A stretch of 64,000 bases of DNA from IMG/VR virus record IMGVR_UViG_3300032236_000747, positions 1-64,000 of that record. One strand, given 5' to 3'. Below are positions 1,360 to 4,943 of this stretch, piece by piece; the first letter of the stretch is position 1; each line of letters starts with the position of its first letter. The notes beneath the pieces were generated by a model. That model saw only the letters and a list, made by a program, of their open reading frames with translations. It searched no databases and had not been told where the DNA came from. The position numbers and the translations under genes were made by a program.

Positions 1360-1463
1360 TGGGATGATTACAGCAAACAACTAACTCGCTCCAAAACTTC
1401 GCGAGGCCGACCCGCAGGGGGTGTGCCGTGGGTTCGAGTCCCGGTCTTAGGCACCACATCCCG
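1360..1463 (+). ncRNA. Family-A CAGCA stem RNA, copy 1 (tRNA-like cargo)
   Basis: TGGGATG..CAGCA(1371)...CATCCCG; contains GGGTTCGAGTCCC and GGCACCA. Confidence 0.7.
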
Positions 1464-1480
1464 TTGTATAAAAATAGTAG

Positions 1481-1509
1481 TTGACAAGCTACAAATAAGC
1501 GTGTATAAT
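1481..1509 (+). promoter_or_regulatory. sigma70-type promoter driving Family-A copies 2, 3 and the DUF2828 gene
   Basis: TTGACA-17 nt-TATAAT. Confidence 0.85.
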
Positions 1510-1530
1510 AAACACATAGAGCCAGCTTAC

Positions 1531-1735
1531 TAGGATGATTGCAGCATACAAAACATAATAATCCGAAAGCCTCCCCGCAAGGGAACTAGAGGATAGTGCT
1601 TGTAGAATACAAGATAGTGTCTGTAGAAACAGAATAGTAGCCAGCATAGAAAAAACTGGATAGACTGACGGGGCTTGAACCGATATACTGGGGATAGGGG
1701 TTAGTCGAAAAACTTTAACTGTCCCGCTCATCCTG
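1531..1735 (+). ncRNA. Family-A CAGCA stem RNA, copy 2 (multi-hairpin cargo)
   Basis: TAGGATGA..CAGCA(1542)...TCATCCTG. Confidence 0.7.
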
Positions 1736-1739
1736 TTAA

Positions 1740-1775
1740 TAGGTTATTAACAGCAACATTTTTAATCATAACCTG
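1740..1775 (+). promoter_or_regulatory. Family-A CAGCA stem, minimal copy 3 abutting the RBS of the DUF2828 gene
   Basis: TAGGTTAT..CAGCA(1751)...ATAACCTG directly followed by AAAGGA and ATG 1789. Confidence 0.7.
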
Positions 1776-1788
1776 AAAGGAAACACAA

Positions 1789-3198
1789 ATGAACGCATTT
1801 GTAAACGCAGTAGCAAACCAAGAAGCCCGTACCGCTAACGGTATGAAGGCACGCAAGTCAACTTCTAACAAAGTAGTTGACCTATTTTATAACATCGGTG
1901 CCAGCCGTGGTAAGGATATTGTCCCTGCCTTTGTTGGTGCTTATACAGCAGACAAGAATCTAGCATTGCGTATCGCCCTGTGGGCACGTGATGCTCGTGG
2001 TGGTGCCGGCGAACGTGAGATCTTCCGTTCAATCTTGAAGTACTTGGAAAAGCACGACAAGGATGCTGCATCAGCACTTTTGAAGAAAGTGCCTGAACTA
2101 GGTCGTTGGGATGACATTTTTGTCTTCTCTGACAAGGATCTAAAGGCTCAAGCCTATACTATGTTGGGTGACGCTTTGCGTGCTCAAAATGGCTTGGCTG
2201 CTAAGTGGACTCCACGTAAAGGTGAAGTCGCTCGTGAAATCCGTGAGTTCTTCGGAATGTCACCAAAGTTCTATCGCAAGAGTTTGGTTTCTTTGACCAA
2301 GGTTGTTGAAACTCAAATGTGCGCTAAGGACTGGGATAACATCAACTTTAGCCATGTGCCTAGCGTTGCTTCTGCTCGCTACAAGAAGGCATTCAATCGT
2401 AATACTACAAAGTTCGCTGAGTATGTTGCGGCATTGGTTAAGGGTGATCCAACTGTAAAGGTAAATGCTTCGGCTGTTTACCCTTACGATGTGTTGAAGG
2501 GTATCAACTCTTACAGCAACAACTACAGCAAGACTGAACTTGACCACATTGTGGCTCAATGGGAAGCTTTGCCAAACTTTGTAGGTGATGCTAACATCCT
2601 ACCATTAGTAGACGTTAGCGGTTCTATGAGCTGCCCAGCAGGTGGAAAGTCATCTACAACTTGTATGGATGTTGCGGTATCGCTAGGCCTGTACTTGGCA
2701 GACAAGAACAAGGGCGTGTTCAAGGACACATTCTTGACTTTCTCCGACAAGCCACAGTTGATGACTCTAAAGGGTAACGTGGTTGAAAAGATGAACCAAA
2801 TGGTTAAGTCCGATTGGGGTATGAGCACTAACCTGCATGCCGCTTTCAACCAGATCCTTAACACAGCAGTTAAGAACGAAGTGCCACAAAGTGATATGCC
2901 AGCTATGCTGTTGATCCTTAGTGACATGCAGTTCAATCAATGCGTAAAGCATGATGACTCTGCTATGGAAATGATCGAACGCAAGTATGCGGCTGCAGGT
3001 TATGCTGTGCCACAAGTTGTGTTCTGGAACCTAAACAGTTCTGACAACACACCAGTTAAGTCAGACAAGAGTGGTGCTGCTTTGGTAAGTGGATTTAGCC
3101 CATCAATCATGACTAGCTTGCTAGCCGCTGATTTGGATAACTTCACTCCAGAAGGTATCATGTTGAAGACCGTAATGAGCGATCGTTACGACTTCTAA
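1789..3198 (+). CDS. DUF2828-family helical domain + vWA domain protein (Ro60/TROVE-like architecture)
   Basis: N-terminal RTANG..STSN..DLF and RDARGGAGER motifs, GRWDD, AKWTPR; MIDAS motif DVSGSM, SDMQF, VFWNL, VSGFSP. Confidence 0.85.
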   Translation: MNAFVNAVANQEARTANGMKARKSTSNKVVDLFYNIGASRGKDIVPAFVGAYTADKNLALRIALWARDARGGAGEREIFRSILKYLEKHDKDAASALLKKVPELGRWDDIFVFSDKDLKAQAYTMLGDALRAQNGLAAKWTPRKGEVAREIREFFGMSPKFYRKSLVSLTKVVETQMCAKDWDNINFSHVPSVASARYKKAFNRNTTKFAEYVAALVKGDPTVKVNASAVYPYDVLKGINSYSNNYSKTELDHIVAQWEALPNFVGDANILPLVDVSGSMSCPAGGKSSTTCMDVAVSLGLYLADKNKGVFKDTFLTFSDKPQLMTLKGNVVEKMNQMVKSDWGMSTNLHAAFNQILNTAVKNEVPQSDMPAMLLILSDMQFNQCVKHDDSAMEMIERKYAAAGYAVPQVVFWNLNSSDNTPVKSDKSGAALVSGFSPSIMTSLLAADLDNFTPEGIMLKTVMSDRYDF

Positions 3199-3228
3199 GT
3201 TAGTTGGGGAAGTAACCAGAGACACCCC

Positions 3229-3348
3229 CTTTGTAGTCGGCTATTCTTAGAATGGCTCAAGTTGCGGGCGCTGATAAAATCCTTCTCAGGATTGCAACGA
3301 AGGAGACTGATAACAAGGTTTTGAAAGGAGTACCTAAAACTCCTTTCA
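3229..3348 (+). ncRNA. Candidate structured RNA downstream of DUF2828 gene
   Basis: Nested helices CTTTGT/ACAAGG, AGTC/GACT, GGCTATTC/GAATGGCT, GTTGC/GCAAC, AATCCT/AGGATT plus TGAAAGGAGT/ACTCCTTTCA hairpin. Confidence 0.4.
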
Positions 3349-3354
3349 CTTTAT

Positions 3355-3430
3355 GTCCCTATCGTCTAGTGGCCTAGGACACCAGCCTTTCACGTTGGGT
3401 ACACGAGTTCGAATCTCGTTGGGGACGCCA
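3355..3430 (+). tRNA. tRNA-Glu (TTC)
   Basis: Cloverleaf, loop CTTTCAC, CCA. Confidence 0.95.
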
Positions 3431-3517
3431 TATTAAAATACACTGATGTGTGACTGCGTCACTATGTTAGTGAGAGGCCTACTAAAGCTGTAGGATGTTA
3501 GTGTGTTTTTATATGGT
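3427..3517 (+). ncRNA. Family-B tRNA-spacer stem element, copy 4
   Basis: GCCATATTAAAATACACTGA / TTAGTGTGTTTTTATATGGT spanning the whole Glu-Ser spacer. Confidence 0.6.
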
Positions 3518-3604
3518 GCGGTCCCATAATGGTATTGGAGCGGATTGCTAATCCGTCGAGTGGTGAAAGCCGCTTTCTGAGTTCGAGTCTCAGTCGCACC
3601 GCCA
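3515..3604 (+). tRNA. tRNA-Ser (GCT)
   Basis: Cloverleaf with long variable arm, loop TTGCTAA, G73, CCA. Confidence 0.95.
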
Positions 3605-3610
3605 ATATAT

Positions 3611-3881: not shown

Positions 3882-4069
3882 CGTTGAAACCCGGTCCAAA
3901 CTTTAAAATGACAAAACAAAATAAACGTTATTTGTCATTGATTGTTGATCCACATGAGCGTGGTGCTCAAAGACGCTTGATGATCCAGGCACAACTTGCT
4001 GGTGAGATTAGGCCAGCTAGGGAAAAACGCAGGAATGATATTTCAGAACCTACAGGCTCTGCGGAATAA
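3878..4069 (+). CDS. Hypothetical protein
   Basis: ORF overlapping rpoZ stop (ATGA). Confidence 0.65.
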   Translation: MTLKPGPNFKMTKQNKRYLSLIVDPHERGAQRRLMIQAQLAGEIRPAREKRRNDISEPTGSAE

Positions 4070-4072
4070 GCA

Positions 4073-4360
4073 ATGAGCAAGGGTAGTAGACAACGTCCAG
4101 TAGCTGTTTCTCAGAAACAGGCTGACGATAACTTTGAAAGTATTTTCGGAAAACGTGTTCCAACTTACATGAAAAGATTGACCGAGGAAAACAATATGAC
4201 ACCTAGTGTTGAACAAATGAAAAAAGGTACTTGCGGTTGCGGCCGTAGTCCAACTGGCGATTGCTGTGGATGGCATGGTCTTAGCGAAGATATGTACAAA
4301 CAGCGTAAAGAAGAATACGAAACTGGTAAAGTTGATCTTGCTGGTAATGAAGTAAAGTAA
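4073..4360 (+). CDS. Small protein with CDGSH-like Cys/His metal-binding motif (internal start at 4196 possible)
   Basis: CGCGRSPTGDCCGWH; GAGGA RBS before in-frame ATG 4196. Confidence 0.6.
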   Translation: MSKGSRQRPVAVSQKQADDNFESIFGKRVPTYMKRLTEENNMTPSVEQMKKGTCGCGRSPTGDCCGWHGLSEDMYKQRKEEYETGKVDLAGNEVK

Positions 4361-4367
4361 AGGAAAT

Positions 4368-4441
4368 GCGGGATTAGTTTAATGGTAAAACTATATCCTT
4401 CCAAGTTATAGTCAGGAGTTCGATTCTCCTATCCCGCTCCA
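4368..4441 (+). tRNA. tRNA-Gly (TCC)
   Basis: GCGGGAT/ATCCCGC, loop CTTCCAA, U73, CCA. Confidence 0.93.
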
Positions 4442-4448
4442 AGTTTAT

Positions 4449-4524
4449 TCCTCGATAGCTCAGTTGGTAGAGTGCCGGACTGTTAATCCGTTGGTCCCTG
4501 GTTCGAGCCCAGGTCGAGGAGCCA
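4449..4524 (+). tRNA. tRNA-Asn (GTT)
   Basis: Cloverleaf, loop CTGTTAA, CCA. Confidence 0.95.
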
Positions 4525-4531
4525 AGAGTTT

Positions 4532-4587
4532 TAGAATCCATTCAGCAACTTAAAATTTTATATTGAAAATAAAAAAAGCGGATTCTG
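4532..4587 (+). ncRNA. Family-A CAGCA stem RNA, copy 4
   Basis: TAGAATCC..CAGCA(4543)...GGATTCTG. Confidence 0.7.
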
Positions 4588-4597
4588 TTAGTTAAGT

Positions 4598-4673
4598 GGG
4601 GGTATAGCTCATCTGGGAGAGCAGGTGCTTTGCAAGCATCAGGTGGCGGGTTCGAGTCCTGTTGCCTCCACCA
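4598..4673 (+). tRNA. tRNA-Ala (TGC)
   Basis: Cloverleaf, G3-U70, loop TTTGCAA, CCA. Confidence 0.95.
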
Positions 4674-4682
4674 AGTTTAGTA

Positions 4683-4762
4683 GGATGTACGGGCTGACCA
4701 CAACGCCACGTGTCAAGGAAAGGCATCCAAAGTGTAAGTGACAGGTTTGGTCACACTTACGC
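4683..4762 (+). ncRNA. Candidate two-hairpin RNA with loop-loop complementarity
   Basis: GGATGT/GCATCC and GTGTAAGTG/CACTTACGC stems; TGACCA/TGGTCA. Confidence 0.4.
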
Positions 4763-4772
4763 ACGAAGAGTT

Positions 4773-4943
4773 TAGGATCGGTTCAGCAATATTCATATTA
4801 CTATGGACTGCTAGTGTTATTGGGTATAATTGGAGTTCAGAGGTTCGCCCGAGAACGTTGAAGGTTATACTTGAAGATATACACTGGATAGAGGAGTTTC
4901 GATAAGTCTCCTCGATAAAAACAAAAAGTAGGCAACGATCCTG
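4773..4943 (+). ncRNA. Family-A CAGCA stem RNA, copy 5
   Basis: TAGGATCG..CAGCA(4784)...CGATCCTG. Confidence 0.7.

Follow-up and report, generated by a model that had tools for sequence, protein, structure and literature searches.

The first 64,000 nucleotides of IMG/VR virus record IMGVR_UViG_3300032236_000747, referred to here as the window, contain five short elements grouped around a gene for a DUF2828/DUF7788 protein. With a probability of roughly 0.7, these elements are genes for small structured RNAs of an uncatalogued Y-RNA-like family, the cognate protein of which is the product of the adjacent gene, a predicted paralogue of Ro60. The window forms the beginning of a 354,680-bp contig that has the appearance of a freshwater jumbo phage. 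Ro60 and the Y RNAs form a classic RNA quality-control particle, whose bacterial and viral biology is known from a handful of species. Ro60/Rsr proteins combine a helical ring with a vWA domain and bind Y RNAs through the stem that pairs the RNA ends, leaving the remainder of the RNA as a variable effector module. The analysis points to a second, sequence-distinct and widespread branch of the Ro/Y-RNA type, with its own recognisable RNA handle. The five elements, called clamp RNAs below, and the gene are arranged as follows.

1360..1463, + strand: clamp RNA copy 1, 104 nt; handle U-GGGAUG(A)-UUA-CAGCAA ... CAUCCC-G
1531..1735, + strand: clamp RNA copy 2, 205 nt; handle U-AGGAUGA-UUG-CAGCAU ... 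UCAUCCU-G
1740..1775, + strand: clamp RNA copy 3, 36 nt, a bare handle without cargo; 26.4 bits with covariance model R1 (described below)
1789..3198, + strand: gene for the DUF2828 + DUF7788 protein, 469 aa, with a helical ring domain, a vWA domain and a DVSGSM metal-ion-dependent adhesion site (MIDAS, residues 275-280)
4532..4587, + strand: clamp RNA copy 4, 56 nt; handle U-AGAAUCC-AUU-CAGCAA ... GGAUUCU-G
4773..4943, + strand: clamp RNA copy 5, 171 nt; handle U-AGGAUCG-GUU-CAGCAA ... CGAUCCU-G

Every element has the same layout: a T, a helix joining the two ends, CAGCA 11 nt after the T, and a G directly after the 3' arm. The first-pass annotation of the window had described five elements on the + strand with an end-to-end helix of 6-7 bp and CAGCA 11 nt after the U, and each of these details was confirmed, coordinates included; the fuller motif is CAGCAA, found in 4/5 copies, with CAGCAU in copy 2. 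The helix is 7 bp long in four copies and 6 bp in copy 1, where the seventh position is A.A. In each copy's minimum-free-energy fold the terminal helix forms and CAGCA is mostly unpaired. When the T / 7 bp / G pattern was sought on both strands of the whole window, one extra site emerged (30126-30423), with an unrelated arm; by rough estimate, chance would supply ~0.5 such sites per window and ~0.03 per 3.6 kb. Because 2 x 64 kb yields a single additional site of unrelated arm, five related copies in 3.6 kb lie far beyond chance. The helices had also been described as different in sequence yet complementary. Variation at positions 1, 3, 4, 6 and 7 is indeed compensated every time, but the helices are not wholly different, since they share an AGGAU/AUCCU core. 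A clamp-like TAGGATG ... CATCC without CAGCA also occurs at window positions 4684-4735, directly 3' of a tRNA-Ala gene, and may be a degenerate clamp copy.

The handle recurs far beyond the window. Its family form consists of a 7-bp helix made from the two ends, 3 nt, an unpaired CAGCAA (present in 420/473 unique relatives) and a G past the 3' arm, all enclosing a variable interior. Sizes range from 36 to 460 nt across the family and cluster at ~51-64, 104-123, 156-171 and 195-286 nt; genomes often hold many copies, and some copies are without any cargo. The strict pattern was counted in 80 IMG/VR loci selected because they encode the protein (74-100% identity), with 269 occurrences on the gene strand as against 18 on the opposite one. 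Scanning IMG/VR for the pattern added at least 120 further contigs, bringing the pooled set to 200 viral loci with 567 elements among the matches listed. Detection relied on exact 7-bp stems, so these element counts are lower bounds.

End pairing was examined at 469 unique sites picked by the 5' motif alone, with the complement plus G sought within 450 nt. An exact 7-nt complement of the site's own arm lies downstream in 82.5% of them, compared with 2.9% when the 92 distinct arms are swapped. A covariance model made from the phage copies, R1, was then run on 654 kb of other loci and returned 37 matches, bacterial and giant-virus copies included, every one of which adjoins a DUF2828 gene; their alignment has double-sided changes at 7/7 pairs, with 99.6% of cells paired. 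Bacterial stems diverge in sequence (AAGGCAC, AAGACAC), yet their length of 7 bp is retained, as are the 3-nt spacer, CAGCAA and the G past the 3' arm. The 3' G is found in 114/129 bacterial relatives and the 5' base is A in 95/129, so the closing U-G pair, which the first-pass annotation had counted as part of the architecture, is local to the phage group and not family-wide.

Terminal inverted repeats with variable inserts, present in several copies per genome, are also features of repeated DNA, whether miniature transposable elements, the borders of recombination cassettes (integron attC-like) or chance inverted repeats. Such an origin is hardly credible for the clamps. Their orientation is tied to the transcribed strand, 269 to 18 in the viral loci and 121 to 3 in cellular genomes; CAGCAA sits asymmetrically on one arm only; changes over 92 arms are compensatory; the cargo is tRNA-like; and no transposase or integrase is linked. 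Integron attC-like sites came into consideration because of a GTT after the 3' arm, and both these and miniature transposons were rejected on the strict strand bias and the asymmetric CAGCAA.

The protein encoded within the cluster belongs to Pfam families DUF7788 (PF25043, 1.9e-50) and DUF2828 (PF11443, 1.1e-21) and matches phrog_850 of PHROG at 3.6e-146. Pfam TROVE (PF05731) gives no match at E <= 0.1, neither NCBIfam nor PADLOC contains a model of this protein, and the sole Ro60-specific Pfam match is a weak one to vWA_Ro60 (E 0.035), under its cut-off. An AlphaFold2 model built from a 50-sequence alignment reached a predicted local distance difference test score (pLDDT) of 90.5 and a predicted template-modelling score (pTM) of 0.90. 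With this model, the ten best Foldseek matches in the PDB are all Ro60/TROVE proteins, from Xenopus, human, Deinococcus (Rsr) and Thermus phage phiLo, at E 4e-9 to 3.5e-7 over ~530 aligned columns; the matches that follow are isolated vWA domains at E >= 2.8e-3. Structural alignments with 1yvr, 2i91, 9kop, 9l5y, 2nvo and 9nen give TM scores of 0.48-0.64, and a profile search of PDB sequences likewise ranks Ro60 first, weakly (E 0.021). Residues D275, S277 and S279 of the MIDAS are invariant in the protein alignment. The product is thus predicted to adopt a Ro60/TROVE-like ring + vWA fold over its full length, as expected of the divergent Ro-like protein that the first-pass annotation had proposed, and to be a Ro60 paralogue.

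Resemblance to Ro60 has been recorded before in this protein family. PHROG 850 carries the label 'RNA-binding protein', some giant-virus members are 'TROVE domain-containing protein' in UniRef, and the cluster L mycobacteriophage label is 'Ro-like RNA binding protein'; UPIE gp53 and Alf5 ORF043 are both DUF2828 + DUF7788 proteins. These phage 'Ro-like' and PHROG 850 annotations concern the same protein family, but at the level of a name only. Overexpression of LeBron gp53 is mildly toxic, and LeBron also carries an RNA ligase and a polynucleotide kinase (PMC13148394). Since Ro-like annotations already exist, what is new is the family of partner RNAs and the fact that it is linked to the gene. 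Nothing in the literature searched describes the CAGCAA handle, the multi-copy RNA family or its occurrence in bacteria and giant viruses; some tRNA-like phage members may already be listed as YrlA.

Linkage between RNA and gene, which the first-pass annotation had put forward from the window's own arrangement, extends to phage loci, cellular genomes, cultured phages and one giant-virus clade; the counts refer to the flanks of individual loci, not to whole genomes. Elements lie upstream of the DUF2828 gene in 68/70 related jumbo-phage loci with enough upstream sequence, usually three of them, and the gene-proximal element ends 10-15 nt from the ATG in 56/68. A scan of 185,579 bacterial and archaeal species genomes with the protein alignment yielded 80 loci at 34-69% identity, among them Lachnospiraceae, other Clostridia, Akkermansia, Treponema, Gammaproteobacteria, Chloroflexota and one Woesearchaeota metagenome-assembled genome (MAG). 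Upstream sequence of at least 400 nt was available for 73 loci, and in 54 of them the 1.5 kb ahead of the gene hold between one and six elements on its strand. By position, 121 of the genome-locus elements are upstream on the gene strand, 13 are downstream and 3 are on the opposite strand. Overall, the linkage spans protein identities of 25-100%.

A DUF2828 homologue is encoded in 706 cultured phage records, and the RNA family lies by the gene in Felixounavirus, Listeria P100-like phages, Campylobacter phages and mycobacteriophage cluster L. The RNAs were confirmed in four cultured genomes: Escherichia phage Alf5 has four copies in the tRNA array 3' of the gene, mycobacteriophage UPIE three copies 3' of gp53, Listeria phage LMTA-57 three copies 5' of the gene with RtcB 1.3 kb downstream, and Campylobacter phage PC14 two copies. 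In Alf5, the annotated minus-strand hypothetical coding sequence ORF044c (L287:7327-7650) overlaps the plus-strand clamp RNAs 7340-7406 and 7426-7551, and is probably not a gene. Among giant viruses, a contig with three nucleocytoplasmic large DNA virus (NCLDV) capsid genes and VLTF3 encodes a 510-aa DUF2828 protein and, ~200 nt from it, carries a divergently oriented array in which 76-nt units follow one another head to tail. Related giant-virus contigs (79-453 kb), all of one clade, are arranged alike, their tandem arrays standing 200-600 nt away from the gene; one giant-virus MAG has its array and its gene on separate contigs. The arrays at L107:13790-14014, L201:9500-9840 and L143:1-286 have a period of 64-83 nt, with 2 nt between units.

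Within the window, all five RNAs share a strand with the DUF2828 gene and with the tRNAs, 13 of which were found in the first 10 kb (ARAGORN, Rfam tRNA), and lie within sigma-70 transcription units. Consensus sigma-70 promoters occur at 844-872, 1481-1509, 3611-3639 and 6235-6263. The features that flank the clamps are these, the tRNAs being called by both ARAGORN and Rfam tRNA.

1281..1352, + strand: tRNA-Met(CAU); copy 1 begins 8 nt past its CCA end
1481..1509, + strand: sigma-70-type promoter, 12/12 consensus (TTGACA, 17 nt, TATAAT)
3322..3348, + strand: terminator-like hairpin 3' of the DUF2828 gene
4449..4524, + strand: tRNA-Asn; copy 4 begins 8 nt downstream
4598..4673, + strand: tRNA-Ala, between copies 4 and 5
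4972..5048, + strand: tRNA-Pro, after copy 5

Copy 1 forms the end of a transcription unit containing tRNA-Leu and tRNA-Met, copies 2 and 3 are placed between the promoter at 1481-1509 and the 469-aa gene, and copies 4 and 5 are interspersed with tRNA-Asn, tRNA-Ala and tRNA-Pro. Copies 2 and 3 and the DUF2828 gene would share a single predicted transcript from the 1481..1509 promoter. This placement, together with the 10-15 nt between the proximal copy's end and the ATG in most relatives and the nearly exclusive upstream, gene-strand location of bacterial copies, would suit elements that act only in cis, as leaders through which a protein or ligand controls the DUF2828 gene or operon from its 5' untranslated region, with no stand-alone RNAs. 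Such a role for the whole set is very unlikely, given that copies 1, 4 and 5 and hundreds of copies in relatives belong to other transcription units among tRNAs, that the Alf5 and UPIE copies lie downstream of the gene, and that the giant-virus arrays are tandem and divergent; the tRNA-like cargo would also be left unexplained. Copy 3 ends 1 nt ahead of a Shine-Dalgarno-like AAGGA (1777-1781) and 13 nt ahead of the ATG, and is a candidate operator for DUF2828 autoregulation.

The proximity to tRNAs raises a different explanation, in which the elements punctuate the tRNA array. Acceptor-stem-like helices would guide RNase P, RNase Z or RNase E, and the stable RNAs released would be by-products without any specific tie to DUF2828, like the stable RNAs, themselves unexplained, that come from the T4 tRNA cluster. 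Across the 200 viral loci, among the matches listed, the nearest tRNA is at a median distance of 77 nt and on the same strand in 382 cases versus 6; units adjoin tRNAs and one another within 2-10 nt, and a 7-bp helix followed by an unpaired purine resembles an acceptor stem with its discriminator base. Punctuation is nonetheless quite unlikely. No free tRNA gene is present at 44/59 element-bearing bacterial loci, where the handle adjoins DUF2828 as it does in giant-virus contigs, and the RNA-gene link is consequently not a by-product of tRNA arrays. Recognition by RNase P or RNase Z needs no invariant single-stranded CAGCAA, and the window tRNAs at 6105, 9547 and 9629 are without such elements.

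The tRNA array of the window includes a second recurrent type of spacer (~55-137, ~214-309 and ~3428-3517), composed of long helices ACCATATG.AAACACA ... TGTGTTT..ATATGGT that extend from the CCA end of one tRNA to the 5' end of its successor. An inverted repeat of 16 perfectly matched bp (1183-1198 / 1261-1276) stands immediately ahead of the tRNA-Met at 1281. These helices and the inverted repeat may be processing stems. Megablast of the first 6.5 kb of the window against cultured phages returned nothing but tRNA matches, and hence no close cultured relative.

Cargo within the clamps ranges from nothing, as in copy 3, through anticodon-arm-like hairpins and YrlA-type tRNA-like modules to larger folds. 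The first-pass annotation had called the interiors unrelated; they are variable, but copy 1 has a T-arm-like hairpin and relatives of 100-140 nt contain tRNA-like modules. Sub-threshold Rfam matches to YrlA coincide exactly with clamp elements at four loci. The best of these, at L119:3655-3779, scores 48.9 bits and falls on the clamp element L119:3638-3760; the others are L097:2097-2212 (element L097:2096-2210), L237:2987-3081 and 3576-3683, and L223:3701-3814. The matching interiors can be read, in order, as T arm, hairpin and D arm, the layout of the permuted tRNA-like module that bacterial Y RNAs carry (PMC4201824), and the middle copy of UPIE (L288:4528-4648) is laid out in the same way. 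GGTTCRA is present in 52/81 unique elements of 100-140 nt. Among short elements, 77/224 enclose an anticodon-arm-like hairpin with a 5-bp stem and a 7-nt Y-U-NNN-R-N loop, compared with 1.5 expected from shuffled interiors; the commonest 'anticodons' are UUU and UGU, in loops such as CUUUUAA and CUUGUAA. Examples are L171:590-659, L166:292-361 and L198:7843-7911, and RNAs of this kind might serve to decoy or to sense anticodon nucleases.

Copy 1 represents a subclass with a T-arm-like hairpin only and is the sole window copy to have one. Its cargo consists of two hairpins and the T-arm-like GGTTCGAGTCC / GGUUCGAGUCC, and orthologues of 104-108 nt occur at L106:8028-8131, L090:10327-10434 and L135:2793-2897. 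A degenerate tRNA or tmRNA-like end was considered for copy 1 and rejected, the T-arm-like hairpin not being adjacent to the 3' arm and a cloverleaf being absent. Copy 2 has a large, structured cargo of no recognised type; its orthologues form an AGGATGA class of 195-286 nt in the equivalent position of related phages. The cargo of copy 4 is a short A/U-rich hairpin, and this copy scores 63 bits with model R1. Copy 5 contains a conserved hairpin, GAGGAG-UUUCGAUAAGU-CUCCUC, and belongs to an AGGATCG class of 156-171 nt in related phages. At the DNA level the hairpin GAGGAG-TTTCGATAAGT-CTCCTC, followed by an A-rich tract, recurs at window 4890-4920 and L019:5790-5923. A further recurrent cargo motif, GGGCAGAGATAACTTCACAGCCTATCAA, of undefined nature, occurs at L011:4546-4665, L033:5527-5647 and L044:1136-1257.

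The genes around the bacterial RNAs place the pair in an RNA-repair operon. About 15 Firmicutes loci (L272, L250, L279 and ~12 others) encode on one strand a WYL protein, a WCX protein, an RNA-bearing gap, DUF2828, RtcB starting 15-83 nt past DUF2828, and often RlaP, an RNA-repair operon led by WYL and WCX and not by RtcR. The handle might then be read by some other protein, such as RtcB, RlaP, a WYL regulator, a host tRNA enzyme or a defence nuclease, with DUF2828 merely co-regulated. The flanking RtcB, RlaP and WYL genes in Firmicutes would agree with this, as would the tRNA-like cargo, which suggests recognition by a tRNA enzyme. We consider it unlikely. RtcB, RlaP and WYL homologues are absent from the window and from the 206 viral loci searched, which leaves DUF2828 as the one constant neighbour in phages, bacteria and giant viruses; moreover, the Ro60 fold is that of a known binder of end-paired small RNAs. 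As DUF2828 is constant, the handle is taken as the putative site at which the DUF2828 ring binds, and the cargo as a putative tRNA-mimicking effector part.

Several observations weigh against assigning the RNAs to the DUF2828 protein. The whole case is built from comparative genomics and a predicted fold. No element lies within 3 kb of the gene at 77/80 giant-virus loci, and none lies next to it at 19/73 genome loci or in Vibrio phage VH7D; DUF2828 genes at the Prochlorococcus single-amplified-genome locus L222 and at L204-L206 are likewise without a nearby element. Many copies are found kilobases away from the gene, among tRNAs, so another protein could read the handle. Every Rfam match to clamp elements is under its gathering score. 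The Ro60-binding stem motif is GGUCCGA, or GNCGAAN0-1G in bacteria (PMC4201824), and both are essentially absent from the first 40 nt of the copies: GNCGAAN0-1G occurs in 1/473 and GGTCCGA in 4/473. Neither is found in the five window copies, in agreement with the first-pass annotation's remark that no canonical GGUCCGA stem was visible, and the binding mode is accordingly not transferable from Ro60. Repair, quality control and decoying are all candidate roles.

In the proposed mechanism, nucleases that process tRNAs would probably release the RNAs from polycistronic transcripts by cleaving the base of the acceptor-stem-like helix. The handle would serve as the binding site of the DUF2828 ring, as the Y RNA stem does for Ro60, and the cargo, by mimicking tRNA, would recruit tRNA-handling enzymes to the particle or act as a decoy. 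A bare handle beside the ribosome-binding site may act as a translational operator through which the protein represses its own translation. In bacteria, the RNA-protein pair belongs to an RtcB/RlaP RNA-repair operon. Hosts attack tRNAs during phage infection, and in the jumbo phage the particle would most likely survey, repair or protect the tRNA pool at that time. Its position inside the tRNA array suggests that it keeps the tRNA pool intact or draws off host nucleases directed at tRNA, and the nearby phosphoesterase genes and the RNA ligase and kinase of cluster L (PMC13148394) fit this reading. The particle probably acts on tRNAs or damaged RNA.

Two genes just past the tRNA array would be in keeping with an RNA-repair theme. 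A dual-specificity (DSP-type) phosphatase (7058-7525) and a calcineurin-like phosphoesterase (8098-8706) are encoded there, and both may be RNA end-healing enzymes. A 73-aa open reading frame at 3660-3881, with its own consensus promoter, belongs to the RNA polymerase omega/Rpb6 family (PF01192, 7.3e-12), and its product is by this match a phage-encoded omega-like subunit.

The pairing of RNA and gene reaches RtcB repair operons of gut Firmicutes, Akkermansia (where the RNAs lie beside the gene) and giant viruses, and gives both a simple sequence rule for finding the RNAs and, in the 36-nt form, a minimal candidate binding site. It offers an explanation for unannotated gaps in phage tRNA arrays and connects these arrays with RNA repair or anti-defence. 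Tractable systems are available in E. coli K-12 with Felixounavirus and in M. smegmatis with cluster L phages.

Comparison with catalogued RNA families begins with tRNA, the only family that Rfam reports in the window at gathering thresholds. Clamps resemble tRNAs in having a terminal helix of 7 bp whose 3' strand is followed by an unpaired purine, in being co-transcribed with tRNAs, and in the T-arm, D-arm and anticodon-arm look-alikes of their cargo. Unlike tRNAs, they form no cloverleaf, neither ARAGORN nor Rfam RF00005 recognises any of the five, they do not encode the CCA that the neighbouring phage tRNAs encode, and CAGCAA takes the place of position 8/9 and the D-arm region. The Rfam search for a known family ended without any gathering score being reached on a clamp element; the sub-threshold matches are to YrlA, through the cargo, and to RF01414, through the handle.

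RF01414 describes the Class I RNAs of dictyostelids, which are abundant and developmentally important, act by an unknown mechanism and are thought to be unique to Dictyostelia. Its sub-threshold hits fall only on clamp elements, at 33.8 (copy 4), 35.3, 35.3 and 32.4 bits against a gathering score of 41.5; on the giant-virus loci Rfam finds nothing at E <= 0.5, RF01414 included. Class I RNAs have a stem joining their ends (6 bp; covarying in the clamps), a conserved single-stranded motif that ends in CAGCAA and directly follows the 5' strand, an (A)AG start, a CUGU end and a variable interior, and their length of 42-65 nt is close to that of the short clamp class (PMC7919456). The 11-nt Class I motif CCUUACAGCAA matches the clamps at 6/11 positions, in the CAGCAA half only. 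The clamp spacer measures 3 nt in both phages and bacteria, one fewer than in Class I, and 3-4 nt in giant-virus copies. Class I RNAs are individually transcribed in a eukaryote from a Dictyostelium upstream sequence element (DUSE) promoter ~60 nt upstream, whereas clamps have sigma-70 promoters and polycistronic transcripts. The one known direct binder of Class I RNAs is the RNA-recognition-motif (RRM) protein Rnp1A, and the RNAs are reported absent outside Dictyostelia (PMC7919456). A giant virus of eukaryotes has RNA arrays beside its DUF2828 gene, which bears on the possible link. That the two groups form one family, with Class I RNAs as Y-RNA equivalents of eukaryotic DUF2828/TROVE-like proteins and a particle that moved between bacteria, phages, giant viruses and amoebae, is a tentative and rather doubtful proposal; if true, it would possibly supply the Dictyostelium RNAs with a protein partner.

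Ro60 and its Y RNAs are the closest known system. For certain jumbo phages, ROT/TROVE proteins accompanied by a tRNA-like partner have been noted (PMC7824862), and the Salmonella operon combines rtcB and rtcA with a Ro60 orthologue and Y RNAs (PMC4201824, PMC7790460). Unlike Ro60, the protein described here falls in Pfam DUF2828/DUF7788 and not in TROVE PF05731. Unlike Y RNAs, the clamps have a stem of only 7 bp, carry CAGCAA in place of GGUCCGA or GNCGAAN(0-1)G, and occur in many copies per genome, at 36-460 nt and sometimes free of cargo. The YrlA family (RF02553) has a threshold of 69 bits, above the 48.9 bits of the best relative, and has no match at E <= 10 in the window. With the Y RNA motif missing, the YrlA scores below threshold and the protein outside TROVE by sequence, the system is classed as a new variant and not as Y RNA or YrlA. 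The regulators of its bacterial operons are WYL and WCX proteins, not the RtcR of the Salmonella rsr-yrlBA-rtcBA operon, with which it shares the partnership with RtcB. As in Ro60/Rsr-Y RNA systems, a ring + vWA fold, here predicted, is combined with small RNAs encoded within ~2 kb on the same strand; as in Y RNAs, the ends pair into a stem with a short conserved motif beside the 5' strand; and the effector part varies, in a subset of relatives taking the form of a permuted tRNA-like module. On this combination of genomic and modelled features, the system is a putative variant of the Ro60-Y RNA particle.

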